DNA from: Botryllus schlosseri
Taxonomy: Eukaryota
Reading direction: 5' to 3'
DNA: 64,000 nucleotides
Assembly (NCBI GenBank): GCA_051294905.1
Contig: CM119382.1
Coordinates: forward strand, 9,796,001-9,860,000
A program made the translations under genes and the position numbers. Positions within the stretch are counted from its first letter, which is position 1. The number at the start of each line of letters is the position of its first letter. This document shows, in pieces, positions 22,550 through 50,400 of this stretch. The notes below the pieces were generated by a model, which was given only the letters and a program-made list of their open reading frames with translations, was not told where the DNA came from and made no database searches.

Positions 22550-23438
22550 CTAACCCGAAAAGTTACGGTCCACCGGGTTCGTAAACGGTGTCGCGGTCCG
22601 GTTATTGGATCCGGTCTTCGGGACGTAAGGTTTCGGTCCTAACAGCGGCGATGTCAAACTAGTGGACTGGTTTGCGACATTGCTGCCATCGTTGTCCTCC
22701 TCCACCGGCAAACCAGAGTCGCAAGATGGCGCTTTCGCACTAGACGACGACGACGATGACCGCGTCTCGTCGTTTTCAGCTTTTAGCGTGATTGACGACG
22801 GCTGCGTCTGCTGTTCGCTGTCAATCTGTGACGTCGCAGTCGCTTCATTATCGCTGTAGGCGTTGCTGGGAAACGGCGGCGGGCCTGTAGATTCAACGTG
22901 ATCGCCTGTGTTTATTTGTGTGCTGTTTTCGTCCTCTGTAACACCGCTGAGAGGCCTGCGAAACCCTTGGTTTTGTTGGGTCTGCTGTTGGAAATGCGCC
23001 GGCTGGCAGTCGACCACGCCGTAAAATTTATGCTGCGGTTGTCCACCGTATTGGAACGAATGGCCGGCCGAGCTGGGTCGAGAAACCGCGCCGAATTCGC
23101 TGCAGGAAGACGCGCAGCTGCTAGCGCTTCTACTGCTCTGCGTACCTGGCCTTCGCCCGGCGCTCATCGCGTAAGCCTGGTTGTTTTGATGGTCCGCGTA
23201 ATATCTCGGTTGGAAGGTGTTCATTTCGTAGTTCCCCGGGTATTCCTGCGGCTGTAAGTCTATGCGTTGCCCGGTGTATGATTGGGCGGACACGTTAGGT
23301 CCCGGGGCGTAGCCGTTTTGCGGGTGGTTTGGGATGTACTGCTGTTGTTGCTGCATGTTGGGATACAGGCTCACCCCGGTGACGGCGTTGTATGTGGGTG
23401 GCGGAGATGGGGTACCGTAACTCGGGAGGCTGGAGTCT
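22550..23438 (-). CDS. ROR: ROR last exon, S/P/Q-rich cytoplasmic tail to the TAA stop
   Basis: Extends the ORF track entry 22550..23374 upstream to acceptor cttatatttcag; low-complexity Pro/Gln/Ser tail as in RORs. Confidence 0.88.
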
Positions 23439-26400
23439 CTGAAATATAAGGATTTTCGTTACTACACCACGTAAATTTGCTTTATGCATCTATTCGAGCA
23501 GTGGTTCTTGAACTGAGCCAAGACATTCTAAGAACCACGGAATCCGAGTCGTGAGTGTGGTCATGGCCATTAGCGATGTAGTTCTAGTTCCGCAGAGCTC
23601 AAGTAGCTTTTGTGTACTTACAATATTTACTCAAGTGGTTATGATTTTTCACTACGTCCATTACTACTTGTCAGTTTTCAGTTTTTTAGGCGAACCCGGT
23701 CCTGGAAAACTTACTTTATTACCTAGTTGGAAATTGCTACTTCTACTTGTACCAGAGTAAAAATTTACGACTTTTCTTCTACTTCTACTTTGAGTACCAA
23801 CAGTGACTACTTTGACCACCTCTGTTCGTATATTTGTTATGGGCAGAACTCGCATATCAGTTTCGGGGTGGCGATAATTTTGAATTCGTTTTGACTTTTG
23901 AGTATTCCAGTCGCCATGTAACTAATGTAATTAGACCGACAATGGCTTGAAACTACTCATTCGAAATGAGGTGCAGCTAATAGACGGAACGAAGTCAGAT
24001 TTGTACTCACACTATTAGTGCTATAGCTCGTGACCCGAGAGCTGAAATTTAATATAACTGGTCTTAATCGAAAGCCAGTGTCGCACTAATTCCGAATATA
24101 CATATTAAAATATTGTCAGGGCAATCGAAGTATGGAACCGCCTCAAAACATCCCTCAAAGTCTTAAAATCGGGATTGTTCCGAACAATAGCTTGACGAAG
24201 TTGGCCATTGAGTTGCAGCGCTGCCATTGTTGGAACATTGTCGATTGTCGGGGTGGTTCCATTGCCCTGACAAGATTTTTATTCGTATTTTTGGAATCAG
24301 TGCGACACTAGCTTTCGATTACGACCAGTAGTATTAAATTTAAGCACAGGGGTCGCCAGCTGTAGCACAACCAATTACGCCACTTTTAGATTGGTCCGCA
24401 ATAAGAGACACTGGTTGGCCAAGCGAAACGACCGGAAGTTGCGTATCTATCTATGCGTAGATTAGTAATCTATACTCACACTCCGGAATATTGGGCGTAC
24501 TGTCCTTCGCGCATGATGTTCGACACTTGCCGGTGGATTCCTCTCGCTAATTGTGACGTCACACGAGTGACATTGGCGTTGTCCCAGCCGCAGAGTTTGC
24601 CGTAGATTTCCTGAAATACCACCCAAAATGATTTAATAAAACCGACATTATATATAAATTATAAAGTCAATATTTAGATAAAGCCATAAGGGAAAGTATA
24701 AAACTTTACTTGAAATATCAGTTTCTTTTTGACATTGCTATTAGTATTACGACGTGGTGGCAAAAATCCAGAATTGACAGAAACACGGATGGTCAAAGTA
24801 GTTGGCGTTGCTATTCAATTAGAAGTATAAGTAACAATAACAGAGACATGTCAAAGTTAATTCAAGTAGTACTAAAAAATGATGATATGAGTAGTACTCA
24901 AGTGGCAGTGAATCGGAAGTGACCGCAATTGCTTCATGATTAACGCAAAGTGACAAATAGGTGTATTGTCCAAAAATATATTCACTTATTCAGTTACCGT
25001 GATACAGGGGCTGTCACTCATGATTCGTTGCCACGACGATTTCAATAAGGTGATGCATGTATAATGTATATCTAAAAACCCCATACTACTTTACAAAATC
25101 GAAAGTATGAAAAGTCAGTAGTTTTGTAGAATTTTGTCAAGTAGATGTGGAAGTAGTCTAAAGACATAACCACTTGAGTAATTAGTACATATATGCCAAA
25201 CCCTACTTGAGCACTCGGAAAAAGTAGTATTGGTCAGCTGGGGATAGCAACCATTGTCCTTGATAGTAATTCGTGAGTGGACGTCAACACAGCTCCAAAC
25301 AAATCAGGAGATGAACAATACCTCACCTTAAAGTTGGGCCTCGTGGCTGGTTCTTGAGCCCAGCATTCGCGCATCAGGGAATACACCCGCGCGGGACATT
25401 GGTCAGGACACGTCAAAAGTTGAAATTGCGTCACCATGTCCAAAACCTGCCAAAAGAGTACGCGGTTACGCCGGCGACTTTACAGAGCTTGGCCGTCACG
25501 ACAAGATTATTTCGGAAAATTTAAGAGTGTCTCACCTCCTGGTTGCTGTATCCGCAGTACGGCTGCATGCCGTAGCTGTGAATTTCCCATATCAGAACGC
25601 CAAACGACCAAACGGCGGTCTTTTCGGAGTATGTATTCATGCTGATGCATTCCGGAGCCATCCATCTGAAGGAAAACGTATCCGTATGAACCGACCAGAT
25701 GGGATTGTCAACACAGCAGAAGGAAGAATAATTCGCGGGTCAGTGAAGTGTAAATCAATTTCCCCTGCTCGCGTCAACAGCACGTGGAACGCATTTTGGG
25801 CGAATACATAAAGTTTCCCGCGCGCGCGCTCACCTATTTAATTAGAGTCTCGCACCGTGAGAACTGCGAAAGGTGGTGCACGTAGCATTGTGAATCGGGA
25901 TACCGTATCTTAAAATGCGAAATTCCCGACCATGATTAGGGTATTTAACCATAGGATATAACCAGCACCGTAACTGCCGCACCCCAAACCCCCCAATTGG
26001 GGGGGGCCCGAGCTCGAAGGGGGCCCAAAATTATTTCGTGAATTAGCATAAATCATAGAGTAATTTTTTTAAATTTATGCAATTTTTTCAAAAAATTTTT
26101 CGCGCTGTGCGCGAATTCAAGATGCCATTTGTCTTTATTATTGGGTATTGGGCCATTACCGCGCCACGACCCACCAAGACATACAAACAAGTTTTAAGCC
26201 ATATAACATGAGACTCCAAGAAGTGTGCCAAAACAATCGGCAGCGAGAAAACATTTGCCGAAAAGGACTGTGCCGTTATGCTGACCGAAGACTTCGTTAT
26301 ATATACAAAATAGGCTACATATAGATTTAATTGTCCATAGCGCCTAAATGACTGGCGCCGAATGTTCCCGTCTTGGCAATCTGAACCTCACAAGACAAAT

Positions 26401-29400
26401 ACCATCCCGCTGAGAAAAATTTTACGCCAGTGAAGAAATACCAATTTGAAATCGTGTGCGTCTTTCAGTTTAGTACGTTCATGTGATTTTATATTTTTTG
26501 ATCTAGCAGACTGGAAGTCACGAAATAACATCATGTAACGAAGTCATATCAACGGGTCCGCCCGCCCGAAGATGTTTAATTATTATTTACGGGCCCTCCC
26601 GTCTTCAAGACACTTCACTCAGCTCTACCGGTAAATTTAATTACGTGAGTAGAGAGGACAAAGTGATAGCAATATATATGCAATTGCCGATCTGATTGAC
26701 CGATTTTATCATAAATAACCGAACATTTTCACGCTTCGCGCTGGCTCGCTATACAGTACAGCTCATTGCGTGACAAACGCGGGCAACGTGATTGGGGGGG
26801 GTCGTTATATCATCCTATGGGAGTCCAAGACCCAAGTTTTTGGGTTCCCTGACGAGGTGCTGTTTCGTTCCTGCCAACGGGTATACGCCCGAAGATGTTT
26901 ACTTATTATTGAGTGGTCCTACCTTTTCGAACACACGTCACTCAGCTCTACCAGCAAATCTGATTACGTGATCAGAGATAAGATAAAAATTGATAACAAT
27001 ATATATGCAATTCCCGATCATACTGGCCGATTCAATCAAGAATTCTAGAAATTTTTCGCGCTTCGCGCGCTTAGGTGAGAAAAGCTGACTCACCCAACAC
27101 CCCCCCAATGTAGATGATAAGTAGCCATAAACAGGGCAAAGCCTGAGGGGGGTCTGGGGGGCGCAGCCCCCCAGAAGTTAGGTTTATCACCCTATGGAGG
27201 GCCCAAGACCAACGTTTTGGGGGGGGCCTGACGAAGTGCTGTTACGGCCCTGGATATAACACGATGTTAAGAGTGTCGTAATCTTAAAAACGCATGAACG
27301 TTAGGATACTCGTCACAAACGCGGTGAAATTTGCATATTGTGTTGACTAAAACGTAGGGAGCTATGGAAAAGAGTTTCAGATCTAAGGAAATGAGCATCT
27401 TTGCGACATCGAAAAACTTAAAAAGACGTCTTGAAAATTATAAAACTTGCACAAACTACACTTTTTCGGAATCCCTGACATTTCCCCTGACCCCAATTTT
27501 GCCGCAGAATTTCCTATCGCCTGGCCATCGTAACTGTGTATGAATCGTAAGGTTTGTATAATTATGATATTTTTTGGATATGATTTATACATCAGAACAG
27601 GACTTTGCTGTTGTATGAATGCTAATTGTCACCTTCGCATTGGGATATATTCAACAACAGTGAAGTATTGTGAAACGTATCTGTCAATGATGTGTGATGT
27701 CCATACCTAATCGGGAGCATTCTACGGCGTTGCGGCGACCTATAGTAGCTCGACAGATAGCAGTCTCTGACGACGTCAAGGTTGCAGATTTTCAGGACAT
27801 TATTCTGGCACACGAGAACATTCCTTGCCGCCAAATCGCGGTGAAAGTAACTGTGCGATGTGAGATATTCCATCCCAGATGCGATCTACAAAACAGAAAA
27901 CATTGTTTACGGGTCACAGTATATCTGCGGGTTGCTTCATTCTGAAAACGCCGGGGCAAAGCCTGTAACTTTAAGAGTGTTGAGTTATATTCCTTTTTGA
28001 TATGTACGCAAATCGTTCTGTCGCGTCGATTCGCGAGATGGATGAGCGATTCGGGAATTGTTCATGTGATGTCACAAGCGTTCGGACGACGGATCAAATC
28101 AAGCGTAAACGCCCGTTATCCGTGCTGTCGACCGTGTTCGGTTAAGCGTTTGTTTACTCAAAAATACGATTACTCGGGGCAGTTACAGTTTATGAATTCA
28201 CAGTTCACACCTCGTTGTGTTGGACGAGTGGTGGTATGGAAAACCTAACACTGTTGCCGTTGAACAGCCTGAAGTGCTGTATTCATTCGAACAGACCAGA
28301 CGCTGTGCTAGACAACGGTTCGTAATAAAAAGGATATGGTGATTAGATTGATTACACATCATTAAACAAATTATTGTAGAAGTATAGAAGGGTATTTCCT
28401 AATTGCCAGCGATTTTACAATTAGGAAAATATAAGATTAACGTATTACGGGTGGGACCAGAGATGACGGAAATGACGAGGTCCCGTACTTGGCAATCATG
28501 ATGTGTTTCCGTCGAAGATATACGAAAATCAGGGTCGTATCAAATGTTCACATTAAGATACTTCGGGCTAGTGCCAAGGATTTGGTTGCATATCCAACAC
28601 TGTGTATATATTGGTTACTACCATCTTCGACATTCAACTGACTGGACAAACGAATTTGACAACGGGATGGGTGCTGCCTTCTGCTGGCATTGTAAACACT
28701 GTGTATCCAGCTGCTATCGGTGCTTTCGTTCGTGATTACTAAAATATGACTTCACAGAAAAGGGCAAGGTATTGAGCAAAAATTTGATATTTTGTCATTC
28801 AGCAAAAGACAGATAGGAATGAACAGCTTCCCTATGTTTTCTGATATCATGAACATCACATGAACACGAAACGAAGCACCAATAATTACAAAAAGAATGA
28901 GATGAAGATCCGAAATGGACTATACGAAATCGTTATGTGGCATCGATACCGTTGTGACCGAATGATTGGGAGATGCAAGTACCAAAAGATGACAAAATTA
29001 TGACACTTGCTGACATATCAAACAAGCTGCCTTACCCATAATATACCTATCGCATCAGCTGATGATACGTTGCGGGCACTGACCTGAGTCATCATGTTGA
29101 TAAAGTCATTCGACTCCAGTGAGCTCGACGTTTGGCTGCTGGCGCTGCTCGACAGCTTGGTGGGTACCACAACGTCTGAATTTGGCGAGTGGAGATTCAG
29201 AAACTCGTTAAGGTCAACGCGGTTCGTGTATTCGAATATCATGCACTGTCGCCCGGGATGCATGACGACAGCCTGAACAAAGGCAATGGAAATTGATCAA
29301 TGGGCACCAAACGGAATTGAAACGCAGTAAAGCAGAGTGATGATATTGCTAGATAAAGTAATCGCTGTGGAGATTCATACAACGCAAGATCCATTATATT

Positions 29401-32400
29401 TATAGGCATGTCAGCTGCCGCAAGCGGTCTGGGTATGTTAAATTCTAACATCGTCCTGCGGATCCAATTACAGATTCCACGAAGAAAAACCAACCATCTG
29501 ACACTCATATCGGAAAATGGATCAACTTAGTCGGAAATTTACGAAGTTATAGAGGATTTCTAGTCTTGGAAAAACTAGAAAATCTCAAGAATTTTGATAC
29601 CAGTCCGCCGCATAAATTTCGCGAGAAAAATACTAAATGATATTTTCAACACACCTTCAAACAGGCCACATTCGGGTGCTGCAGCTGGCTGAGCTTGTCC
29701 ATTTCGCTCTGGAATTCGTCGATTTGGCAAGGCAAGGAGCCTTCGTTGAGAGTCTTCACCGCAACCTGAAATCCAAAACGTGTCTTGACCGCCGATAATA
29801 AGGACGATTGTGTTGTTAACAAATTGGATAACGAAATCCGTTTCCTCTTCATCGATGGTATCGGAACCGAACAGAAATAACACAGTCTAAATTTCCACTT
29901 GGAAAGAGTTGTAATATCACCGGAAAATTCAACTTAATCGAATCAAAGCTAAGCACTTTGTAACCACAGACTCTCCAGAAAGTGTCGGGAATAAATAATT
30001 ACCAATTGTTTCACATTGCGATTCGAGACGACGCAATTCTATCAATGTGCGGGACTGCACAATCGCAACTAGTAATGGGGTAACCATTTATAGGTCTCGT
30101 CGACCCCGACAAAAGTTCACAACGCCCCACTGGGATCTGAATTTATATTAATCGGCGAAATAGTCGACTTCCTCGCAAAAATAAATGAATTATGCTCTAG
30201 AGCAGTGGTTCTCAACCTGAAAGCATTGAAGTGAGGGGGGGGGGCGAAGAAGCGGTCAACTGAAAAAAATTCGCGCTGGCGCGATTTGCCGATAGTTCAC
30301 GCGTGTTTCTCTATATACAGACCGAATTCCATAATTTTAATCCTCTCATCAACACTCATAACCTTCCATACCATTAAACAATCTGTTGGGGTTGCTAGCA
30401 TCCCGGTTGGATTTGGTGATATGACGATAAGGGGGGCGCGAAATTAATCACTATCAAAAAGGGGGCGTGTCTAAAAAAGGTTGAGAACCACTGCTCTAGA
30501 GGCCTCGCCGTCTTCATTTCCGGTCAATTACCAAAGTAAATTGGGACCAAATAGCAGGTTTGTGTATTCGTGTCGGTCTGAGCAAGTTTCCTTTGTTCGT
30601 TACAACTTTCTTGTCATGCACGAAGTTATACCGATATGCCTCGCGAGCTTCCTTTTCGTCGGAGGAGAATGTCCCTATTGTCAGGTGTAAGTTTTGGTTT
30701 TTACCTAATCACATATTAAATGACTATTTTCGTGATTTGGGTTATTTTTGTCGACTTTCTAATAATTTCATTCCATATAATTTTTGACGTTTACGTTCTA
30801 AATATCGCCCAGCGAGTCATAAAGCGATATGTAAATGACTTACACGCGTTGCCTACATTGTACATAAAAGGCCCCAATAAATTGCGATGTTCATCGCATG
30901 TAAACAATACCACCAGAAACATATCTTAACGCGAAATCTTGTTCTAAATCGATTTGTGAACCAATTATAGCGCCATTACATCTTTGCATTCCTGAGAAAG
31001 GAGTACGTGCGTGGACCGAAAGCTCAATATCCACAAAATCTCTTTCGAGAAATCTGTATTTTGAATTGAAAACACCGGTTTAAGATCCTTATCAATTAAT
31101 CCAACACATTCTTGTTAACGACAGGATTTCTACTGTGCTTGTTTCTAAATAGAAGTGTCGCATAATTCCAACGTGATAAACAAACCAAGCATTACATGTT
31201 ACACCAAAGTGAGCTGTTAGGCTTTTCTAGCGACAAGCGAAAAGTCCGAGTTAGCGCAAATGATGGGTATCAAAGTCGGAATGTCCACGGATTCAATTGG
31301 CGTGTTTTTGAATGTGATTGCGGTGTCTGCAATATTGCAACTGTCAATATTAAATATTAACAAAAAGCGTAAGTCAAAACTGTACTCGATTTGTCATTCC
31401 TGTATAATGGATCGACTTGAGCGATGCAATAATTGCTCATTGTTTATAGAGGTATGCATATAGACAGCGATAACAGTATACGTATGAAAATCAATGTGAT
31501 TGGTTATAACAAAACGCATTGTCACGACATCAGTTATTTATACTGTATCAATGCATTCGATAAAACATCAGCAGAAAATAGTCTGATGATAGTTCGGTTC
31601 GTTAAGTTACAGTGCTCCGCCATCATACAATAGAAGAGCACCAATTTCCCAATTCGAAAATACGCTCTGTCCAGTAGGTCAAGGATTAAGGCAGATCGTA
31701 AACTCATAGCACGGCATCACTTAAGAACACGAAGAGGTGCTTTTGAAAGACCGAATTTTGAGAGCATGTTTATATGATACAGATATGGTCAAAGTGCGAT
31801 ATGGTTGCGGAACCCGTAATCTAACACTACGCCAGAGTCATACGCGAACATATATCGGCACGCGATGTATATTAAGAGCGTTTCCTGTCTCATTCGTCAA
31901 CATTGTAGGATCATGTAACGGAAATGCAACTTAAGGGGGCGTGATGTGATACCATATCCCGTCTTGTGTGGTTATTTGTTATGTAATTGAACTCTTACTA
32001 ATGCGTCTTGAAGATGAACTGCACCTTTCTGGGCTATGTTGTCGCTGATTTTTGAATTGACATATTTGCCGCACATACGTCACATAGTCCCGAACATGTA
32101 TTCAAAATGGTGTACCCATAATACGTGTGGGAAGTCACTCTTTTTAGTTGATTAAAATCCAGTGCGTGATACGCGTGTGCATTTTCAGTAAATATAACTC
32201 ATTGATAAATATTTTGGATCTGATGATATTTTTAGCCGCCATCCTATTCGTAATCAAATAGAATAGGTATAAACTGCCGGTCCTCAAATGACCAATGTAC
32301 TTACATCTCTACGTAGCATACGATGGCAATGATGTACATCTATTAAAGGAGTTGAATCGTTGCATATATAAACCATAGCTGTGTAGTGTGCACTGTGTAT

Positions 32401-35400
32401 TCCAGCTCGATCATTAAGCATGATATATTCAACGTTCGAAGATACATTCAACGCCATTTAGGATACTGAAAGCGATGTTTACATTTGAATAACAATTTCA
32501 TAAACGTCAAGAGTCTGTAAATAGTTGTCTTTCTATCAAGATGAAACGCGACCGGAGGCGCGAGGAATTCGGTGGCTGATTGCGTGTTCGATAAGGCGCG
32601 CCTGTGTAAACAGTAGCAAGCGATACGCCAGATCTCAGAAATTCAATTATTTACAACCATTACGGTGTTAGTATTGTGCGAGCCTATTGACGAGTTGACA
32701 TTGCAGTAGATGGACTGTCGTGGCACTATGAAATTCAACTTGGACTACGATTCTACTCTATCCAATAGCCAATATCACGTTTACCTCCACCTTTACGCTG
32801 AGGCTGCATAACAGCATGGCACGCGTCTTGTAACAACGTGGAAACGAGTTCTATCAGACCATAGATAACTAACCTACGTAGGTTAGTTATCTATAATCAG
32901 TCTGCGCACGCGGTGTGCGTACATTGTGACGTCATAATTTCACGGTTAAATAAATACGCCTAGTGTATTTCCAATTGTACTGTTACGAAAAACGGGAAAA
33001 TGTCGGACGTATGTGTATCGACAGTTCGACACGCTGTCAAATCAAATTTGCCGGGTACGTGACTACTTCTTTGAATAGGTATTAGAAGTGTACCGGTATG
33101 ATTCACACCATGTAAACCTTACATTCTCCATGTCGAATTAAAACTAAACGACAATAGTGTTTGCTAACAAACCAACTACGCTTCTAACAGCCGGCGGCTA
33201 GACTAAAGCTTACGCAGGTGGGATGTTCTAACACCGCAGTATAGGAAACTATCCGTCGGTGAGAATCTACATTCTGCGAAACTCGCAAGAATGCATTGGA
33301 GCCGGCGAACAGTAAACAGTGGCTGCATCCGGATCCTGTACGTAACAGGAAGAAATGTTTTGCTGAGCAATCGTGGGTTGGCTTGACAAATAAAAATAAG
33401 GGTCAGACAAAGATAATTATCAAAATTGGGAATGGTGAGAAAGGTAAATCCTATCAACGGAAAAATACTTCTGTTTGGAGTCAAAGGTGGTCTGGTACAA
33501 TAAAATTTTACGTTTACGATGTACCCCATGAGAGTTCTGAGTAGCCTACTAAAATGTGCATTATAGCCAAATCCCCGAAATTTATTCCTTTCGACTGAGC
33601 GTAGCACCATCATAGTTGCAATTCGTCACTTCATAACCACATATATTCTGTATTGGCATCGTGGATATAATCTAGCTATGTCCGCTTATCATCGGCTGCA
33701 TGACTACCAACCGCGCACAAACTCGACCATCTCACGACTGTGACAACACCAGTATTGCGCAAGCAATCCATTGTCAGGTTCAAACCTGCTATTTATTTGT
33801 AATACTAAAATATCAAATGGCAAAAAAGAGTTAAAAGAGAGATAGGAAACATCAAATATAACATCAAAATAGTGAAAGTCAAGTACAAAAGCAATGAAGA
33901 CTTCAACATGTCAACGGAAGAACGTCTGTACGGCATTCAACCATTCTGCACAAAAGCGAAATAGAACATGGGCAATTCACGGGTACAGCATCAGTCCATA
34001 TATTCTGGCATGTACACGGCGGCGTCACAGTGATAAGTCTAAGGATCACGGTTTCCGCTGTTATAGAAACGAGAAGGCCTACATCCGCGAATAATCTTCC
34101 CCTGACATTGAAACCTTGGGGTTGGCAAATAACTCGCCGGTTCTCAAAGCCAGCAGTATTCCAGCGTGATGACATAGCGCTGCGGTAACGCTTCCACCAC
34201 AAAACCCGCTAACCGCGCGCTCAAGCCGTTAATTACAGTCCATTCGCGAATTTGTTTTGATGCAGTCTCTCCTTATTTCCGGTTAGAGGCGGGAATTACA
34301 TCCAATTATAGCCGGGCTTAGTCGGAATAATCTCTGTTTTACTTACAGGAAAATTCGAGTTGTAGGTCAGATTTTGAGAGAGCTGGGCCTTGTACACTTT
34401 GCCGAACTGTCCCTCTCCCAGGTCCATCGTGAAGCGGAGGCTTTGTGGATTCACGTGGGGTATATTTGTCATCTGTAATCGCAATACATTACCGAGGATT
34501 TGTCGCACAGTATTTGCAGTTTGTAATCCGGAAGATTGATATCAGGGCGTCAAAGCGATAAATTGTGAACGAATGGTCGGTAAATATGTGTGCATTATAT
34601 TGTTCTATTATATCCCGGAAAGGTGATGGTAATGAGTTTAAAAAACGTGACTCTACCCTTTGTACGATAATCCTCGACACACAGCGTAATATTGTAGCGT
34701 TTCTCACGTTTTTGGGCGCCATTGTCATTTCCACCGAGTGAAACGCGGTGCCACTATCCACCACCTTGCCGGGTATGCCCTTTTGCGGCCTTCTAGTCTT
34801 TCTGCCGCGGCAGCAAAAGATGAATGTTCCCACGGCGCACAGAATCAGCAACGGAACCGTTACGCTCGGTATGAGAATGGTGATCAATCCGGATCCGTCA
34901 GTCGAGACCGCTGAAAAGATATACCACAATGGTGTTGCCGCGATAATGTTATAATACGCATAAACAGTGTATATACTTCGACACTTAATCCACTATATGT
35001 GTCAAAACATGAAAGATACGCGGAATATGTCACGTAATGTTTTTAATCCTACAGTTTGAATCGTTTAGCGCAGTGATTCCTAAACTGTGATACGCGGGCA
35101 ACCATAGCTTACCTATAAATTTATGAAGCTTGCGAATTGATGAAGCAATATTTGCACTGACTGGCTCATTTCCAGAAGCTCAAAATGGCACGAGATTTAA
35201 AAAAAATGGGGATCGCCGGTCAGCGGTTGCATTTTACTTGTGCGGAGGCCTTCACTTTGTGATAACGCGCTAAAGTCTATATAAAATAGGCTACATGTGT
35301 CGCTGGAATCATATCTTAGCATGGGTATCACTTCATATCTAGCCAATCTAGCATCAGCTAATGAACGGCCCGGAATGTTTTGCATTCAAATAAAAAAGGG

Positions 35401-38400
35401 AATTTACATTAAAATGCCATTACCATTAGGGTTGCATTTAAAAAAAACGGTGTTTTAAAACACTGTGTTTAAAACATGTTTTAAACAGTGTTTCAAACAA
35501 AGGTCTTTTAAAAAAAAATGTGTTTTTTTAAGCGATAAAATTATGCCATAATTGTGTAAATACTTTCCAAAAAACATGCTGTATGAGCCTACGGACAATT
35601 ACCACCCGAAATAGCCGATGTATATCGATATGGGATGGTTGCAAACCTCAAAATAGTCGGTTCAACATTAATAGTACAGATATTTCGTCAAAGGAGCTAT
35701 AGCTACCCTGTATTTTTAATTATTAATGCCAATCCACTATGACGTCACAATTCAATATTCGTGAGGTGATGGCTTGAAAAAAAAACATGTTTTAAATTAG
35801 GGCCTTGTTTTAAAATGTTTGTTTTAAATTGATTTTTGTTTTAAATGCAGCCCTAATTACCATTGAACACGAGGTCAGAAGAAGAGGGGAAGAATCATTC
35901 GTTACAGTATGATGTCATTACAACATGCTAGACTCTTGCTGCCTCCTGGTTACAGAAGAAAGAAGCAACCATCGTCAGATCTACGACACTGCGGCAAAAT
36001 GAAACAAAATCTCAACACATTTGTAACGCGCGGTAAATATTACGGAGAGCTGCACGTAGTCTCGCTCATCCACAAACACATTTCCTATTACCAATTACAA
36101 ACAGTCACCGGAGATTAAAAGTTTTCGAATCATCTTATATCCCGAACTGTCGAGATTAAAGTTTCACATCGTGACATGAACTCACCGCAGTGTGAAACGT
36201 CACACGTCGCCCTGACTTTTCTAGCCTCATCCACGAAACACCAGGGCCGCTCCTCCACGGCACCAGGATTCCGGCAGAAATTGTGACCACCAGACAATTC
36301 AGGATACTGAAAACAAAAGAATTTAAGCTTAGATGGATAACAGACTTAATAAGCTCAATTCTATATCATCACGAAATCGCACAATAAATCACGATGGGAT
36401 GGTTTCTGTTTGGTCGATTGAATATTATTATAGCGACCAGAATTGGTGAAGGTTTCCACAACTTCCCTAAACTATGAGTTTAAGTGGAAGTAACCAATAG
36501 AAGAGATGAAAACTTTTTAAGAAGTAGTAGATTGTTAGCAGTTAATCGGAAGTGTAAACTTTCGACATTGCAAGATTTCTCTTCGTGACTAACGCATAAT
36601 GGCTAACGACATTGCAAATTGGTGCAAACTTTTCAAAAATATATTCATTTACCAGGAGCCATTACGCGGTTCATATGACAAGTTCTCTCAAAACATCTAT
36701 CGCAAAACTACAGTCTGAAATTATAACCAGTACAGTGAAAAATGCAAGCAGGCACAACACATTTGAGCATTACAAAAAAACTGAAGGACTGCGTTGCTGA
36801 CCAGTGAGCAGTGACCACCCCTTATAGCAACACAGATACACGCTTTATCGTGGGAACGTCTACAAGACTCAATTCGTTACCTCTTGGACCAAATCCAGAG
36901 GCCAGGTTTGGCACTTCAATCCCGACTCGGTCGATCTTTTTGCGCCTCTGTACCCGGTGCCCGTGTCGTTATAGCAACCGTGCTGGCGGTTGACGACCGA
37001 TGGCAGGCCTACTTTCAAGCAGGACGCGCCGCGGGGTGTGGTGGGCGGCAATTGAGAGCAGTTGGCTGTAGATGCGATTTCCTGTGAAGAGTGATATATA
37101 TCAGATCCATGTCGATTGATTTACATGCTAACAGACAACGCCGTAAATTAGCAACGATTTTAACTGATCTGATTTGCTCACTGGTGAATGCATTTTATTT
37201 TGATATTTCGATGGGTATTGCCGTAACGTTTTACACAACTACAAATATTTTATCTTGTATTTCCACCGGCGAAATGATACCAAAAAGTGCAGATGGCCTG
37301 ATTTGCACCTCCCGCTATGGCGCTAAACCGGTAATTAAAACTATTTTCCATTATGAATTCACAGCGTACTAGATTATTCCAGGGCAGTTTATTCGATTTT
37401 CATGATGAATAACATACACTAATGTCCACGCGAAGGCTTACGGTTATACGTCACAAACATCAGCATAGCTTCTTAACAGCAATTTTTTTGTCCGTAAATT
37501 TTGCGACCTATACCCAATTCCTTACCGACCGGTACTGCAGTGCCGAGAATGCAATCTTATACCTCCATGAACACATCGTCGTCCGGGTTCGCGAATTCGT
37601 CCTTGCACACGTCGTTCATAAGAAGTTCGCAGTCCTCTCGGCAAAGCCGCGAAGCTCTCTCCTCCGGTGATTTCCTGCCGTTGAACGCCGACATGACCTC
37701 GTCTTCGTCTTCGCAAATCGGGAACACGTAGTAGCAAAGGGCGGGCACCGCGAACTTATGACAAGTGGCGGATATGATGTCTGGATCTTCTGTGGCGAGA
37801 GAAGGGCTGGGTGAGACACGACTTCGTAACGGGGTACGTTTCTGGTTTACAGAAGCAGGTTTTGCATACTTGGACTACATAAGTGGTCTTTTTATTCAAA
37901 ACTACATACCTTTTACACCTTTGATTTTGTAAAGTTAATTTAAGGGTAAGGTTGCAGCATTTTCACGGGTGGAGAAGTCATAAGGACCGCGGAAATAACT
38001 ACTGCATTACTGTAACTCAAAACACCAATGTGCAGTGTCACCAGTCATTTTGCGTTTGTTTCGAAGATATATCACGTGAATTTTAAAAGTTCCCACCTCA
38101 GATTTACTCATAAAAGGTATCCGAATCGTCTAAGAAATCCACTTTTTTAAAGTACCTACTTGGAAAATTTTCATGCCATTCATTTTCTATTTTCATTTGA
38201 AGTAGTTTTAACCTGTCTAGGAAGTGGCTATTTCTACATGTAATTGCGCAGCAACGCTGACTATTTGGACCCGCACTTCTGGGTAAGACTTGAGAGTAAG
38301 AACTACTTTAATGCCAATGGTTGATAAGACGGCTGTAGTTGCGACGACAGAGATTAGACACCTACTTATGCGTTTCACTGCCACTGATATGAGTTTCTCC

Positions 38401-41400
38401 ACCTCCATTTGCGATTGATAAGGATCGATGTAAACGTTCTTGCCGCCGAGAAACGGCCGGCATGCGTATCCCACGTACTTTTCGCATCTTCCTTGCGGTA
38501 TTATTCTGTAACGAGAATGTGGAACATACATGCATTTTGCGAACCAGTAACTTGACAGAGGATAATGCATGAGATAGCGGTTGAAATGGCGAAGTGGCAG
38601 GCTAGCTGCGTTTTGAACCCGTTACAACTTTCAGTCAGCTTGAGAATCAATACAAAGAGGACTATAAATCCATAGATTGTGTAAAGCGTGATTATGTCAT
38701 TGATGTAGCAGCAAATACCTTTCACATGGATGATGCCATAACCAACTGACAATAACCAGCCTATCGTACCTACGACCAACTAATGTGATCGAATTAAAGT
38801 GCGGGTGAAATTATGGACCATGGTCCATTATGAAGGCTCACTGACGAGTAACAAACAACAAGATCGGCAGAAAAACATGAGAAACGTAATGGTCCGATCA
38901 CACCCAGACATCACACCTTGCCGTAATTTAACGGTGAGTGGCCTATTTTTATGTCCACTGTTTTAATTGCATATTTCTCAGAATTGGACAGGTAATTAGG
39001 TCATACAAACAGCACGCCTTTAAAGCAGACCTTTGATTTAGGAGGGTGAGCGTATCTATTTCAGAATTTTTAAAAATTCGGTACTCACGGCTCTTCGTCT
39101 GTTGCTGGCGGCGGGGGTTTCACTGTCAACAAAAAAAAAGACACAATGATTACTGGTGAAATATGTCGTGAAACAGTCAAGTTGGAATATCAAAAATCGT
39201 ACACAGGCTATTCAATCAAAGTGGAAACCGTTGTCAAAACAACTATAACATTCTCACGCGCTCAACGTCAGGACAATAAATATGGAATCACATTAGACTG
39301 CGCTAAACCGGATAAACCCAGTGACATATTTGACGAAAGTCTTCGTCTTAATGATAATCTTCGTAAGCCAGAGAATGACCAATGTATCTAATCTTGCTGA
39401 TGCAGGCTAAGAGGCTTAACGACTGCTTAGTGGAAGTTGATGAAATTGCGCTAAAACGCTGATCTTCGTCAACCCCGGTGGCGGGCGATGAATACCAGTC
39501 AGTTCTTTGTGGTGCCAGTCGACCGTGTGATAAATATGATTTATAACCATTGAGGTTTTGAATTGCCATTGATTGGAACAAAGCTTTATAGATCGCACTC
39601 CGGTGGATTTTCGGCTATATCACGACACAGTTATTAACCAATATTTGCGTAAGTCTGATTTGGATCAATTCTTTTGCTGATGCTTGATTAGAGGATTAAC
39701 AGTTGACCACCCATATATCCAAACCCTCAACCCTGAAGACGTGGTTACTCTCGGAATAGCCACCACAGGGTTTGGAACATCTCAAATATCATGTGGCGAC
39801 CACATCCGGTGTGCTATGACGTCACAGTTCACAAAAAGGTGAGCTGTACCTCACCCTTAGTCGATGCGCAAGCCAGCGGTTTCCGCATCGCAATCACAGA
39901 TAACGCCAACACCTCATCTGGATAATGTCACCGTCGATATGGGTGAGCGCAAGTCATCCTGACTTGAGCAACTTCAAGTCAACTCTTCTGCTTAAAATGC
40001 GCGGGTACTTGAGCTCTTACCGACAGCACGGTTATGTTCAAGGTGGCCTTGAATTTCGGGATGTAATGCGAACCGATATACCGTCATTTGGGGTCGTAAT
40101 TAACAGAGAAAAGGGCTCGGGTTACACTTTGGTTCACCAGTCTCTCGTCGGTGACCACGAAACACGAAGCTAGTCTGTGTTTCCTCGTTCAATGCCACAC
40201 GCAATCAGATGCGGTAACGAGTGGTTTGAGTGAGTTGCATTATTATTTCTATCAGAGCCAAGGACATTGCATTTTAACGCTTCTCATATTTTACATTTGA
40301 TATCCGTATACCCATTAGACATAAGTATTTTGTAATTTAGCCACTGGCTCTAACCGGAAATGTTACATTTTGTCCGTGGCCACAGGCTTGGCATTCTTGC
40401 ACATCACAGCGAGTGACATATCGATTAACGTCGATGAAAATGTTGTGTACATTAAACGTATAAAGTTATACTTGAACATGTAACCCGATGGTAAGTTGAT
40501 AATAATCCATACGCACGTAATCCGTACACCATATCCGTAATTACGCAATTGCAATGTCCTAAAACCAAGCATACCGTACTGGAACTCAGCGCTTTGCCTA
40601 ACGCAGGACCTTATCGTGTTGTGAGCAAGAGTTTGATAACATCAGATAAGGTCGGATTGAAATTTCAACCAGGCATCAATCGCCCTGACGCTGTGATACC
40701 AGCGAAACCAACGTTAAAATATTCAATCATGCATCAGTTGAGAAACCCTTTGGCCAAAGCGGTGCATATTCTAGTTTTCTATTTTACCCACTATTATATT
40801 CCGCGATGGGCTCACAAAATCTCAGCTAATTACGCATCTTCTTACAACAAAGCGCATAACACGGTGTCGAAAGAATATCAGGGACGCGTCCGTTATCACC
40901 GCGATAAAGCACACATAAGATAAAGCGGAGGCGCGCGGTTCGCTGGGAACGGTACTCAGAGCAAAGTCCGCAATTAACAACAATGGAAATACAGGGGAGT
41001 GCTATCCACTCCAACTGTGGTGCATATCGAAAGGGGTGTTTGCCTTGCTATGAAACATTAACTGTTGAACTCATTAATTCAGATATCCGTGTGAGTTTTT
41101 CAATGTATTTCATATATATTCCACGGCACAAGCACGTAGCGCACATTGACACTTTCCCGATTCTACTTATACCACGGTACGATAACTGAATCTCAAAATA
41201 AGTCGTTGACGAAGTGCCGCGTGACAACTTGAAATGTGAAGAGGTAATTCATTCGAATCGGTGTCATTAACGAAAGATATGGAACATTAGCCGATTACTA
41301 ACGATTCCAATACCATTCTCAGATCCTGCTGTTTGAACGGGCCTGACGTTGTGAATTGACGACACTTGACTAAATTCTATAATTCATATGACAAATGAGA

Positions 41401-44400: not shown

Positions 44401-47400
44401 GGACTGACGTTGTCGAGAAATTTATACCTGAGCATCGATACCGAATGAGGCAACGCCGTGGTGCACACACATGACCTGTTCATGTGCATAACATGCCTGC
44501 ATTGCATATATTGCATTCTCGGTAATGTCCATTCTCGGTGGTGTCCATTCTCGGTATTGGCATTCTCTGTAATGGTTTTCTCGGTATTGACCGGACACTC
44601 CTCAGATGAACTGCTAAAAGTAAGCCACCCAACGACCAAATTCACTTTAATTTGCAATGCTTATTGATTACTTCTCCGATCTTCATTTTGTATTTCTACT
44701 AAAATTAATTTTGACATGTCTTGGAAATTGATACTATTACTTGCTATAGTGTAGAAAGCTATGGCGTCACTTCGACTTTTACTTGAGTAGCAACGATGAA
44801 TACTTTGACAATCTGCCGGAATAGTAGTTCTGGTTTGGCATACCAACAGTAATTGGATCCTGTGAAACGGCCGGTGAGATAATAAGGTACACAGTTTACG
44901 TTTTGACATTGTTGATGCGATGACGCTGTCAAATCAGAAACAAAAATCTACCAGCAACCTAAAGCGGGATTAATGAGTCGTCAATATGTAATCCCTCTGT
45001 TAGTAGGTTACACCGCTGTGTTTCCGCATAGAGGCGATATGACAATAATCCCGGCGTTACTTTGAAGCTAGGGAGAAACGATTATGACGCGTACTACGGT
45101 TTCAGTCAATTCACTCCGCAGGAACAAGGAGTGATTGTGCGGGCAACACGATTCTGCAGGTTGCCGAATATCTAACCTGGCTGTTGTGGGTCAACAGCCC
45201 GGGGTCAGAGTCAAGTAAACATATCTAATTGAAAGCAATACAATGCATTATTGCGCTATTTACTATTGGGCGGATATGATCACGAGATATTCGCGGGGCT
45301 TTTGTTTGTTGGCAAAAGTTGATAACAATCTTAGACAATACAACGCGGTTCAGAGCATCCAATATACGCATTTGGGGTACTCGCATAAGGGTCACAAGTT
45401 ATTCGCATGCCTACGTGTTAGGGTGCCCGAATCGTAATAATAATATACTAAAGAACATTGATAGTCATTCATTTCAGGGCCAATTTATATTAAATATGTC
45501 TTAGCGCTTTCAAGTCCTACTTGATTGGTCTTGTAATACTTACACTTAAGTCAATTCTTAATAAATTGCTCTTAGGTATTTATTTAACCTTTAATAACAC
45601 ATGCCAATGACTACCTAGCTGAAGTTATGTATCCGAGTGTCATCCCAACTTCATACACTAGTAAACTGACTATACTTAGATTTTTACGATGTTATTGATA
45701 AGCAGAGTTTGAATTCTTACAATTCTACCATACTATGGGCCGCGTTTCAGTTTCATTCTACGAATACCTTGATTTATCCACAGTTACCGAAGAATTGCAG
45801 CCCGACGCGCGAAAATACACTAGAACTTATGCATCGGAAGTATATTAAAGCCGCATAATCCCGACCAAACAGTTTCAATGGCATTTCGCGTTCGCCCGAG
45901 CCATTCCTTCCGGTAAATCAATATGACCAGTGACCACCGACCGCCAGATATCTCCAATTCTATAAGGCCTTACGAAAACATCATTGTGAAATGGCAATGC
46001 GGCGTGTAACAGAAATAAAACATTTATCACCACCCGGACACTTTCTCTCAACTTTCCATCACTCCTCGATGATGTAATCATGATATATCATCCCCGCCAA
46101 TAGCGCAGCGATCGGTCTGGTTCGCTAACGAGGCGTCCAACGCAAAAGACGCATGCATGATCAGATCAGGGTTACCATTATATTCAACGGCTTTATTACA
46201 CCAGCTCGCGCTACTGCCAAGAGAAATCGCGCTCCATGCACAGGAGTCCTGGCGTATTCTATTACCATTGAATAATATATACATATTGCAACAAACCCGA
46301 ATATTGATAACATTGATACACAGTGTTCTTCCCTATTTTCGGCTAGTGGCTGACACTTGGCCCTGGCGAGCGTCATCCGAAAATTTTCGGGTTTATTCCA
46401 CTATGAGTATATTATTCAATTGTATACTGAAATTTTGTACCTCCGAGAGTCTTTTCAAATATTACTATTGGTCAATCCGACAAAGGCTATATCATTAATT
46501 CACTATGCTAAGACTATGATAATTGATAACTCTTGAGCAGCTGCGCCCGAGAAGTCTTCGAGTTACGATTAGGGCCGGGCACAAGGACTCTGATATCGAT
46601 TGTAATAGTACGAGTCGAGCATACGGTCGATGTTTTCCGAGACGCCGGTTTTCAACTTACCGAATCCGACTTTGAGGTAAGCTTTCGTGGCTACTCTCCT
46701 AAATCCGTTCGACGCCTCGCATCTGTACTTGCCCGAGTCCGCAGTGAAGACGTCCCGGATCTGAAACCTCGAAGTGCCGTCTCTCTGACGGATCGAGTAC
46801 CGAGGCTCTTCGTCTACATTTATCACCTGGTTGGACCGGTACCTGAGTAGAAATTGGAAAGCATTAGTGGTCAGCGACGAAGTACTTATAATTTTTCGGA
46901 GTACGTAAGCAGGTTTTGTCTAATTGTTCTAGTTCATCAATTGGTTATGTTGAAGACTCTTTTCAATTCTACGTGAACAGTTTTTTAGGGAAAATTCCAG
47001 ACTTTTTACACAGGTAGAAAGTCGTTTCGTGATGAGTTCATATCTGCTCATTACATCGCAGTGTGTATTGCATATCGCGTTGTACATTGTGTGCGTTTGG
47101 ATCGGTTGAAAAAAAAAATCACGGCGTTGTTTCCATACTTCTACTTAGCCACAACACTGACTATTTCGATCACCGCTGCATTTTATGCTATAGGCAATGT
47201 CGTATATGCAGTTATGCACCTTAAATTGAATATGTAAACGACCGTAATTGTGTCGGACACTCGCGCAATCACTCTCAAGTTACGTAGCGTTACCTGAGCC
47301 AACACAAGGAGAACAAAATTTCGGATTCTACTCTGGGCTACAAGTGGCTTTGCGCGGTTGCCACAATATCTGATTTGGAGGTGGATAATCCGACAAATGG

Positions 47401-50400
47401 GCCTGATCGGATCAATTCCGGAGCGGCGCATTTGCCGAATCAAACGCTCCGGTGATCCGTGCGGTTTAATCCTGGTGTAGAACCTCTACGTCTGCAGGCG
47501 GGCCACACCAAATCGCGGTTACTATAAATCCAAAACAATTGCCTATGAGTGCTAAAGCCTAAATATATTGTTGCCCGTAAGGATTATGTGGGCAGATCTG
47601 GAATGTATAATGAACATAAGTTACCATACTAGTTTAAATAAGGTTCAAATAAATAGATCATACAAGACCCTGCATCTATACATTCATGATTCACTGAGGA
47701 ATAAACAATATAATTGGGGTCAATCGTAGAGAACAATCCACGAAATATACATTATAAAACGACGACAAGGCTACTGGGCAATTTGACCACCTCACATTTT
47801 CGTCGATTAGTTATTGAGCAGTTCGGTTTTTAACACTTTTATATGATCGCGGCAGGGTTGTAACCAGGTCACAAGGCTCCGAGTCACAAGTCAATCTCAT
47901 TTTTATAGCTTTGACTCGAGTCAAGTCGAGTCATTTTCAATTCACCACCGAGTCAAGTTCGAGTGCAAGTCATCGAGCAGAGGGTCAAGTCCAAGTCATT
48001 ATGGTGAATGCTCAGTTTCCAGTTAAATTCTACTTAAACCCACTTTTTATAACTCTGTTTGGTGATATCGAATGGTTCGCATTTATAATATACTAGTTCT
48101 CCTTAATTTTAGCAGTTTTTTAGCGAATTTTTTCAAGTATACCAGTACCAATAGACGAAATCCCAATAGTGTGGTTACTTTACTATTCTTCGAATTTATA
48201 ATGAAATGTCGGTCTTGGCCGTTTGAGTCTCGAGTCTTATGACTTGGTTCGAGTGATGCGCAATGACTCGAGTACAAGTCGAGTCTAGACACAGATTGAC
48301 TTGAGTCGAGTGATTTCCGCATTTTGAGAAAATTACTCGAGTCACGTCGAGTCATCAGAAAATCGTGACTCGAGTCGAGTCATGACTCAAGTCATTACAA
48401 CCCTGGATCGCGGCAAAGAAATTACATCACATTTATCAAATCCGCCCGGTCAAAGTGATGGGAAGCGTCACAGGTGTTATAGCTACAGCATGATGAGGAA
48501 AAAATACGTATTTTGAGTCAGACTGGTTACTATGTTACCAGCGAATGGCATTGAGCGGGTACCCAGCTATTTGATTAGTGTGCAGAGTCCGAAAATGGAG
48601 CAATCTGCTACGGCTGAAGACCTTTATTCTGTTCTACCGGTTTCTTCGCAGTCGCACAGAAGCCAAACATTAATCTTTTACCAAACTAATGCAAACGATA
48701 TCACCGCGGGAATTACTTTTTCTCAACGTTACTGGTCGTAACAGTGATTAAACATCGAAATTTGGATCCCAATAATCAAGCGCTCTGAACTGCTTCGTGC
48801 TTATACAATATACACACATCACAGCCATCCCATTATATGATTCGGCATTGGCTAGGCTAGATCATGTTCTCGTAGCTCTGCAGACTTCTTAACGTTACGC
48901 ATCAAAGCCTAATCCGTTGCAATTAACGTAACCCGTCTACATGTGATCGTGACCAATTGACCGGCACATCAACACGGAGTGCGATCAGAAACACCGAGAC
49001 CACGAGACTTTGCATACAAAAATGCATCGATTCGCTATATCCTACGCAAGGTACCGTTTCTAATCTATTGTGTCCGTGTGTTACTGCAACAAATCGAACA
49101 ATGGCGGCGCTGAGTACTCTGCTCGTGTTGAGTAAATGGAGAGATTATCGTGTGAAGAATTAAAGGCTTTTCGAACGCCCTTTGCACTCGGCAACAAACG
49201 TGGTTCAGTTATGCGTATAAGCAACTTGTATTCACGGCACCTCTCCAGTGTATTTAGGCCTAATCGAAACATCGACCACCAATGTTGACTCAAGGATAAC
49301 GCGCTGCTATTATACCATCATTAGACGATCAACTATTGTTGTTGCGGGTGTTTGCAAAACAGCAAGGATATCACTGGTATCTGTGGAACCAAGAGTGACA
49401 AACGATCGGGGCCGGGACCCTAGCGCCTTTGATGAATGGATGTGATTGCAACGCGCGACGCTTGCACGCAACGCCTTCAAGCAGTCATGCAGACAGGGAG
49501 GTATGACCGCCCTTCACTGTTAAGTTCACCTGGCATATCTGAGATTTTCCAACAGTTATACACTACACACCCGACAAAAGGTATCGGTAATATTCATAAT
49601 GTGTAAAAATGTCCCTGCCGATATCAGTACGAAATGCAGACATGCCTACACTGCAGAAACACATGATATCTGTTTAGTGAAACTGTCCACCGTTGGTGTA
49701 GTAAACATTCAAATATGCGAGGGGCGAAGTAAGGGGTGTATATAAATTTATTTAACACGGCTTGGGGCATGAATGCTTTGTGAGGCTGTGAGCATAAATA
49801 ATGTCACATTGTCAGAATCCAAGGTTTTTGGGCCGAGTTGTCAATAACAAATTGTCCACTGATCTAGCGTTATGAACATTGTGCTTGTGTGATATGCCCG
49901 GGTTTCCGTGGATTTCTCTCGCGCAAGGACCGAGTAAACTGACCGGCCATTACGTCACCCGTCTAGGATAGCTTATTACAACCAAAAATCACTCACCACG
50001 TAAATTTGAGGTCGTCAGTCGGGAAGCCGTCGACCTTGCATTTGAACTGCGCCTTGTCACCGGAGTAGAGCGTTTGGTTCTGCATTTCTGACACGATGCG
50101 CAGATAATGGTCTGAAATGACGTAATCGTTGACGTAATTAGTAAATAGCGGGCGACGGACAGATTTCAACACGAAGTCCGCGCTCTGAACACGTTTATTC
50201 TACACCCTTTTTCACGCAGCGCCTACAGACTATTCAACGGAGCTCTATCCGTCGTCAAATACCAAAAGTACCTTCACTCGGTGGCTGCGATTAGGTCACG
50301 TATGTTATTACAGCTTAGAAGTGCGTGTCCGTGTAAAGGAAATTTTAATATCGTCCGCGAGATTGCCGGAGCGGTGCTGATTTATCGCTCGTGGTTTAAC

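Follow-up and report, generated by a model that had tools for sequence, protein, structure and literature searches.

Loss of two kinase aspartates in a ROR receptor of Botryllus schlosseri and in the RORs of other sampled tunicates

Vertebrate ROR receptors are considered pseudokinases, signalling in the absence of robust catalysis (PMC4100928; PMC13259870). Catalysis is deficient in human ROR1 and ROR2, and CAM-1 of C. elegans is active in vitro (PMC4100928). The substitutions D744N in CAM-1 and D743N in MuSK were used as kinase-inactivating controls, and lowered activity to the residual value of human ROR1/2, 100- to 1000-fold less than that of wild-type CAM-1 and MuSK (PMC4100928). The ROR of Nematostella is predicted to be inactive through a separate loss, with Val in place of the VAIK Lys (PMC4100928). 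Two other Wnt-pathway receptors with an altered DFG motif, PTK7 (ALG, with the Asp gone) and RYK (DNA), signal in a non-catalytic fashion (Table 2 of PMC13259870). Here, we describe a ROR gene on the minus strand of a 64,000-nt stretch of the genome of the stolidobranch sea squirt Botryllus schlosseri (GCA_051294905.1, contig CM119382.1, positions 9,796,001-9,860,000; hereafter the window), in which the Asp of the DFG motif is replaced by Asn and the Asp of the alphaF helix by Ala. Exon positions are given as window positions throughout.

Vertebrate ROR1 and ROR2 (6tu9, 4gt4, 3zzw) have the same order of immunoglobulin (Ig) domain, cysteine-rich domain (CRD), Kringle, transmembrane helix, kinase and tail as the window gene, and are the best PDB matches at approximately 300 bits. 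Vertebrate and tunicate RORs have in common the Leu in the middle of the DFG triplet, an activation loop with YxxxYY, and the Tyr of the hinge. Of the two groups, only the vertebrate receptors have Cys or Asp in the Gly-rich loop (GxCxxG or GxDxxG) and HKD, whereas tunicate RORs have a canonical Gly loop and HRD. Conversely, the tunicate RORs have replaced the DFG Asp by Asn, and the alphaF Asp by Ala, Val or Thr. An earlier note on this stretch had stated that human ROR1/2 keep the Asp of DLG and that of alphaF and are altered in the Gly loop, HKD and DLG; the vertebrate RORs in our alignment and Table 2 of PMC13259870 agree with this in keeping DLG and the alphaF Asp. Neither element of this vertebrate-type signature, the Gly-loop Cys/Asp or HKD, is present in the window gene. 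The hinge Tyr, which occludes the ATP site of ROR2, was considered as a discriminator and rejected, as active RORs and MuSK have it no less than the window gene.

CAM-1 and the RORs of amphioxus, a hemichordate and most protostomes belong to the same family, with the same architecture, and have the ancestral GxGxFG, VA[IV]K, HRD, DFG and alphaF Asp. The Asp-to-Asn change engineered in CAM-1 is the same substitution that occurs naturally in tunicate RORs. The Nematostella receptor, known to us from the published description alone, resembles the tunicate RORs in having its own loss of a catalytic residue, but differs in that the beta3 Lys is affected. PTK7 and RYK belong to other families with other ectodomains, have HKD, and are not linked to the tunicate RORs by descent. 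The nearest relatives are annotated tunicate proteins from Ciona intestinalis (XP_002130072 and the 'ROR1' entries P0180 and P0181), C. savignyi (H2Z715), Phallusia (A0A6F9DQE4), Clavelina (XP_076811959/60) and Styela clava (XP_039260764 and UPI-series 'ROR1-like' entries). These orthologues and paralogues show 60-75% identity in the kinase domain and have the same Asn and a non-Asp residue in alphaF, and differ in reading NLG or NLA rather than NLD. The names of the type 'inactive ... ROR1-like' attached to tunicate proteins are an automatic transfer from human ROR1. A full-text literature search found no paper on tunicate RORs without the DFG and alphaF aspartates, although an earlier mention in the pseudokinase literature is possible.

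Two lost aspartates and their distribution among RORs

The activation-segment exon of the window gene (27885-27707, with AG acceptor and GT donor) reads from IASGMEYL to MLPIR and contains KIC-NLD-VV, with the codons for N at 27783-27781, L at 27780-27778 and D at 27777-27775. In a phmmer search against the PDB, NLD is aligned under the DLG of human ROR1 (6tu9) and the DFG of FGFR2. The following exon (25665-25536) reads from (R)WMAPE to YSNQE and carries EKT-A-VWSFG, in which the Ala is the minus-strand GCC at 25616-25614. The Asp normally found at this position ties the alphaF helix to the catalytic loop. Alignment shows that GEGQFG, VAVK, the alphaC Glu, HRD and WMAPE are retained. The earlier note had reported both substitutions, in coordinates that prove right to the base upon minus-strand translation and phmmer alignment, and its description of GEGQFG, VAVK, the alphaC Glu and HRD as canonical is borne out as well. 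By sequence, a kinase domain counts as a pseudokinase if the VAIK Lys, the HRD Asp or the DFG Asp is missing, and with Asn for the last of these the window gene falls within the definition.

The window gene belongs to the ROR family on every criterion examined, as the earlier note had proposed. Pfam identifies I-set, Fz, Kringle (two exons) and PK_Tyr_Ser-Thr (four exons) on successive minus-strand exons, and the full domain order is Ig, ten-Cys CRD, Kringle, a single hydrophobic helix, tyrosine kinase, a short conserved post-kinase segment and a tail. The ten Cys of the CRD were counted by direct reading of the model, and the single putative transmembrane helix was read from the sequence as a hydrophobic run of 24 residues with basic residues next to it. 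The top PDB match of the window exon is ROR1. In a comparison with PDB kinases, the kinase domain of an orthologue (P0186) scores nearest to ROR1 (303 bits) and ROR2 (300), followed by MuSK (236) and TrkA (222), and the best database matches outside the tunicates are all RORs.

Homologues were gathered exhaustively by HMMER with the 60-residue activation-segment exon, and by two further homologue searches. The HMMER search returned many RORs with DFG and SDVWSFG, and a small group with NLG and S[AV]VWSFG that was assigned by cluster look-up to Styela clava, Ciona savignyi, Ciona intestinalis and Clavelina lepadiformis. The further searches added Phallusia, second Clavelina and Styela genes, three C. 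intestinalis entries and seven unnamed transcript-derived proteins, together with amphioxus, vertebrate, hemichordate and protostome RORs. The comparison sets were a motif table of 34 aligned ROR kinase domains (18 of them tunicate) and a survey of 220 ROR-level proteins; the named tunicates represent three ascidian orders, Phlebobranchia, Aplousobranchia and Stolidobranchia.

All sampled RORs of the tunicate clade (22/22) combine N-L-[G/A] with Ala, Val or Thr at the alphaF position. Outside the tunicates, both aspartates are kept in 197 of 198 RORs and the alphaF Asp in every one (198/198). The sole non-tunicate Asn is found in a fish ROR2 entry (P0291; UniRef, Amphilophus citrinellus) with NLG for DLG, a single entry that may reflect an error or a real private change. 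VAVK and the alphaC Glu are canonical in the tunicate RORs and HRD is present in all; all but one of the 18 aligned sequences match G[ED]G[QK][FYL]G in the Gly loop, the exception being a long-branch Ciona copy (P0030) with GHGLFG. Three unnamed sequences of the tunicate clade have NLA and the other annotated tunicate RORs have NLG, including the S. clava orthologue of the window gene; the Gly-to-Asp change (NLD) is private to the window gene among the RORs compared. The canonical set of GxGxFG, HRD, DFG and alphaF Asp is found in RORs of amphioxus, Ptychodera, Lingula, Aplysia, Haliotis, Capitella, Priapulus, Limulus and crustaceans. Flatworm RORs have DLG or DIG, and almost all other protostome RORs sampled have DFG. 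Only 10 of approximately 283 columns show fixed differences between tunicates and all other RORs, and three of these are the DFG Asp, the alphaF Asp and the Asp of YxxDYY.

In a maximum likelihood tree of the kinase domain, made without a MuSK or Trk outgroup, the tunicate RORs are united in a single clade (100/100), the stem of which measures 0.62 substitutions per site. Within this clade, S. clava paralogue B is the sister of the window gene (97/92; 75% kinase identity), which makes the window gene the orthologue of this 'ROR1-like' gene. The simplest reading of the motif distribution is that the DFG Asp turned into Asn and the alphaF Asp was lost a single time each, ahead of both the divergence of the sampled tunicates and the duplications of ROR, and that both states have persisted since; the Gly-to-Asp change appears to have arisen in the window gene later than these shared losses.

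The genome contains a second ROR gene, which was found on contig C5 by a search with the window exon as a 70%-identical copy with a Kringle exon immediately upstream. This copy shares the CRD-Kringle-kinase layout, has KIS-NLG-VV and EKS-V-VWSFG, groups with S. clava paralogue A in the tree (100/100) and is the orthologue of S. clava XP_039260764, with 83% identity in the kinase core. A third Kringle+kinase gene was not found in the genome. We looked among the remaining tyrosine-kinase loci for a third ROR or a MuSK-like gene with DFG and rejected all of them: they are InsR/ALK-, DDR-, Eph- and Src-like and none adjoins a Kringle exon. All of these loci carry DFG, and the three for which the alphaF exon is included in the DNA examined read DVW[SA][FY]G, which argues that the loss of the Asp is specific to ROR.

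These comparisons widen and partly correct the picture drawn in the earlier note. It had assigned the loss of catalytic residues to 'this lineage'; the loss is real, but the lineage concerned is that of the sampled tunicates, from three ascidian orders, rather than B. schlosseri alone. NLD as a trait divides accordingly, as the Gly has been lost in the window gene alone but the Asn and the non-Asp alphaF residue occur in all sampled tunicate RORs. Two possibilities that it had raised are not borne out: NLD is not widespread in active invertebrate RORs, since amphioxus, a hemichordate and most protostomes have a canonical DFG, and no paralogue with DLG or DFG was found in the genome, the C5 copy having NLG and Val. 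Its proposal of a route unlike that of the vertebrates stands in so far as different residues are lost. The two routes are not fully independent, however, as the middle position of the triplet is Leu both in tunicates (NLG, and NLD in the window gene) and in vertebrates (DLG). Set against the DFG of amphioxus and the hemichordate, the shared Leu suggests that the Phe-to-Leu step may predate the split between tunicates and vertebrates, although the DLG/DIG of flatworms indicates that such a step can also arise convergently.

Two divergent sequences were encountered in the course of these comparisons. P0030 (Ciona intestinalis XP_002130072, named 'ROR2') is a third Ciona ROR copy with a long branch (0.69), a degraded Gly loop (GHGLFGPV), an altered activation loop (NASSYYT) and no Fz among its precomputed Pfam matches. 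It represents a more degenerate form of tunicate ROR, and its name does not denote orthology to vertebrate ROR2. P0023 / L041, on ENA metagenome contig ERZ25067879, is an intronless ROR-like kinase of 483 residues on a very long branch, with NIG, a retained alphaF Asp, no beta3 Lys (VLAS) and a degraded Gly loop. It was considered for ordering the losses, and was left unused as the contig is unattributed.

Transcription, constraint and alternative explanations

The window ROR gene has at least 15 exons between approximately 50190 and 22550. Our model joins 15 exons into 3117 nt (1039 codons) with GT/AG junctions, no internal stops and a TAG at 22552-22550. A 2588-nt contig from sequencing run X8 (record 16) matches 25534-25665 and then directly 27707-27887, skipping the 2041-nt intron at the predicted sites, and the 2-nt overruns at the ends of its pieces match the bases of the neighbouring exons. 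The open frame and intact splice sites described in the earlier note are therefore supported by both the model and a spliced transcript contig. Four sequencing runs were compared with 25400-28000, and those from three studies show no listed difference at the NLD and Ala codons. The X8 contig has four mismatches in the alphaF exon, all of which have been placed and are synonymous, and three in the piece over the NLD exon. All listed coding variants in runs X1, X5 and X8 (8/8) are synonymous third-position changes, for which the probability in the absence of selection is approximately 3e-6, or 1e-4 if only transitions are considered; the X5 haplotype differs from the assembly by approximately 8% in the intronic sequence of window 25400-25953.

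Conservation between species is highest in the kinase domain. Identity to S. clava B is 75% in the kinase domain, 64% in the CRD and 50% in the tail, and identity to Ciona and Clavelina is 60-63% in the kinase domain vs 36-41% in the CRD. The tail of 296 residues, rich in S/T/P/Q on direct reading, is also conserved in two further stolidobranch transcripts (P0367 and P0368); a homologue search with the tail exon returned these orthologues only, and no protein of B. schlosseri. Exon reads were absent from bulk RNA-seq run X23 at approximately 6% sampling, which is uninformative either way. For the A pair (the C5 copy and S. clava L042), synonymous sites are saturated (proportion of synonymous differences, pS, 0.8-1.0, with 45 kinase codons mapped), and constraint was gauged from polymorphism and from the identity of each domain. 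The window gene is intact and evolves under purifying selection, and its transcript is correctly spliced.

The tunicate RORs, the window gene included, are probably conserved pseudokinases: the Asp-to-Asn change is the inactivating control in CAM-1 and MuSK, and the alphaF Asp is gone as well. On these grounds, we infer a loss of catalysis in the tunicate RORs.

Several observations weigh against this interpretation. CAM-1 and MuSK carrying the Asp-to-Asn change still showed a trace of phosphorylation (PMC4100928). The Gly-loop glycines, beta3 Lys, alphaC Glu, HRD Asp and the Asn of the catalytic loop are nearly invariant across tunicates, which is unexpected for a functionless pocket and leaves room for ATP binding or residual atypical catalysis. 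What we call tunicate-wide refers to ascidians and unnamed sequences inside the clade, with larvaceans not in the sample. Tunicates evolve fast genome-wide, and the long stem of the clade is therefore no evidence of relaxed selection on catalysis. Confirmation of the two codons in reads or RNA, for which the earlier note had asked, is partial: X8 covers both exons in spliced form and without a listed difference, but one of its three mismatches within 27707-27885 is unlocated, so that NLD is not confirmed base by base in RNA. Moreover, run X8 is only guessed to be RNA, for which the spliced contig argues.

A first alternative holds that the tunicate ROR domain is not dead, and uses ATP as a conformational switch or carries out a weak or atypical, metal-sparing phosphotransfer in which Asn replaces Asp poorly. 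Essentially every one of the 18 aligned tunicate RORs retains the G-x-G-x-x-G motif, VAVK Lys, alphaC Glu, HRD, catalytic Asn and APE, across a clade whose internal branches add up to several substitutions per site, whereas the Gly loop and HRD of the vertebrates have drifted. Among other kinases, CASK works although it has no DFG Asp, and MNK1/2 are active with DFD. Against this, few residues of active kinases vary as little as the DFG Asp and the alphaF Asp, and the tunicate RORs have lost both. Retention of the Lys-Glu pair and HRD need not mean catalysis, as these residues also have structural roles. In addition, the Asp-to-Asn change is the inactivating control in the two nearest relatives tested, CAM-1 and MuSK (PMC4100928). 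We consider this alternative unlikely. In a more specific form, in which an ATP switch or atypical catalysis would keep the pocket invariant and the Asp at DFG+2 of the window gene would be a relocated acidic ligand, it appears less likely still. That Asp is found in the window gene only, and both orthologue and paralogue keep the Gly.

According to a second alternative, the window gene is a decaying duplicate, an unprocessed pseudogene in the making, with NLD and the Ala as part of its degeneration, and the C5 paralogue does the work. Its terminal branch is approximately three times that of the S. clava orthologue (0.24 vs 0.078), and the excess of the A copy is smaller (0.14 vs 0.077, the latter being 0.024 + 0.053). 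The private Gly-to-Asp change and the absence of exon reads in X23, at the sampling given above, would fit decay as well. However, the 3117-nt frame is open over 15 exons with canonical splice sites and a spliced transcript contig, and all eight listed coding variants are synonymous in the face of approximately 8% intron divergence. S. clava and at least two further stolidobranch transcriptomes still contain the orthologue, and the Asn and the non-Asp alphaF residue trace back to the ancestor of both copies and are hence no sign of decay. Taken together, decay is very hard to reconcile with these data. Finally, an assembly or sequencing error at the NLD and Ala codons, for which nothing was found beyond the unlocated X8 mismatch over the NLD exon, can be dismissed for practical purposes: independent assemblies and transcriptomes of at least six named tunicate species and the C5 gene have the Asn and a non-Asp alphaF residue, runs from three studies cover the exons with no listed codon difference, and DFG is intact in the other tyrosine kinases of the genome, as is the alphaF Asp where the exon is seen.

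Gene model and surroundings

The junctions of the window gene were solved one by one with GT/AG sites and frame anchors, and the two upstream Ig exons were located by tblastn with tunicate RORs (Table 1). The exon for the signal peptide was not found upstream of 49997..50190.

Table 1. Exons and catalytic codons of the B. schlosseri ROR gene, in window positions.
Feature	Position	Strand	Evidence and remarks
Ig-domain exon 1	49997..50190	-	tblastn with Styela and Clavelina RORs; in-frame junction to next exon; 5' limit not fixed
Ig-domain exon 2	46657..46842	-	Pfam I-set E=5.8e-10; 47-53% identity to tunicate RORs
CRD (Frizzled-type) exon 1	38366..38505	-	tblastn and junction; alternative acceptor 38487 scores 192 vs 191, 5' limit provisional
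CRD (Frizzled-type) exon 2	37563..37789	-	Pfam Fz E=5.6e-6 from the exon alone; junctions
Linker and Kringle exon 1	36881..37081	-	Pfam Kringle positions 1-31; junction
Kringle exon 2	36186..36306	-	Pfam Kringle positions 42-79, E=6.5e-9; junction
Putative transmembrane helix and juxtamembrane segment	34735..34910	-	24-residue hydrophobic run, then basic residues; donor 34735 picked by score, alternatives 34708 and 34765
Kinase exon, Gly-rich loop GEGQFG	34347..34472	-	Splice junctions and kinase alignment
Kinase exon, VAVK Lys and alphaC Glu	29655..29765	-	Pfam PK_Tyr_Ser-Thr; alignment
Kinase exon, hinge (FEY) and Ser-rich insert	29084..29272	-	Pfam match; junction model
Kinase exon, HRD/NLD segment and YLSSYY	27707..27885	-	Pfam E=1.6e-15; ROR1 alignment; both boundaries confirmed by spliced contig (X8 record 16)
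Codons AAC-CTT-GAC, Asn-Leu-Asp at DFG/DLG	27775..27783	-	Translation, ROR1 alignment
Kinase exon, WMAPE and alphaF helix (EKTAVWSFG)	25536..25665	-	Pfam E=4.1e-17; spliced contig; 2-nt overrun past 25536 fits next exon
Codon GCC, Ala at alphaF Asp	25614..25616	-	Translation
Kinase C-lobe exon (alphaG-alphaI)	25327..25446	-	tblastn and junction model
Kinase end and conserved post-kinase segment	24480..24610	-	74% identity to S. clava B
Ser/Thr/Pro/Gln-rich C-terminal tail exon, TAG 22552-22550	22550..23438	-	Acceptor 23438 picked by score; alternatives 23429 and 23420

The intron between the NLD and alphaF exons contains a block of very high-copy repeats (25922-27313), with summed contig depths of 1e4-1e6 compared to approximately 12-90 in the flanks. 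Within it are two tandem units approximately 325 nt apart (26563-26741 and 26886-27068), with 78-81% similarity between them. In run X5, one contig passes from 25953 straight to 27252, which indicates that a haplotype without the whole repeat block exists. The divergence of approximately 8% in the intron sequence at 25400-25953 points to very high heterozygosity or population divergence; either is typical of sea squirts.

The C5 gene (C5:~7418900-7427200) is compact, with approximately 6 kb from CRD to kinase end, compared to approximately 13 kb in the window gene. Its hinge and HRD exons form a single open frame with no intron between them, so that an intron was lost or gained between the paralogues. 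The Kringle domain is strongly expanded in this genome, with 85 exon-level matches that lie mostly in tandem clusters unrelated to ROR (for example C2:2.32-2.36 Mb, C2:21.04-21.08 Mb, C8:12.49-12.52 Mb, C13:9.80-9.92 Mb and C1:31.81 Mb).

ROR signalling in tunicates

By analogy with other RORs, the ectodomain of the window ROR would bind a ligand of the Wnt5 type, through its CRD. If the tunicate RORs are pseudokinases, the intracellular domain would transfer no phosphate itself, and the kinase fold would serve as a scaffold or an allosteric module, which other kinases would use as a substrate or dock on. The retained fold, the YxxxYY tyrosines and the post-kinase segment may all serve this scaffold or docking role, such that the signal from the ligand would be passed on through a kinase-shaped scaffold, its tyrosines and the tail, with phosphorylation carried out by other kinases.

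The mode of ROR signalling, and whether it ever needs the kinase activity of the receptor itself, has long been argued for the human RORs, which are cancer drug targets. Tunicates and vertebrates are sister lineages, and each appears to have degraded its ROR kinase at different residues, with one step, Phe to Leu, in common. This pattern fits a scenario in which catalysis was already dispensable in the common ancestor of both. Moreover, selection preserves the kinase fold more than the Wnt-binding domain. As ROR pseudokinases and the loss in Nematostella were already known, the advance suggested by these comparisons is modest, and what is new are the tunicate-specific residues. The trait is also present in Ciona, in which knockouts and rescue are routine, and kinase-independent ROR signalling is thus testable in a simple chordate embryo. 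The main use of the finding therefore lies in the comparative argument, and in the lead that it provides for experiments in Ciona.

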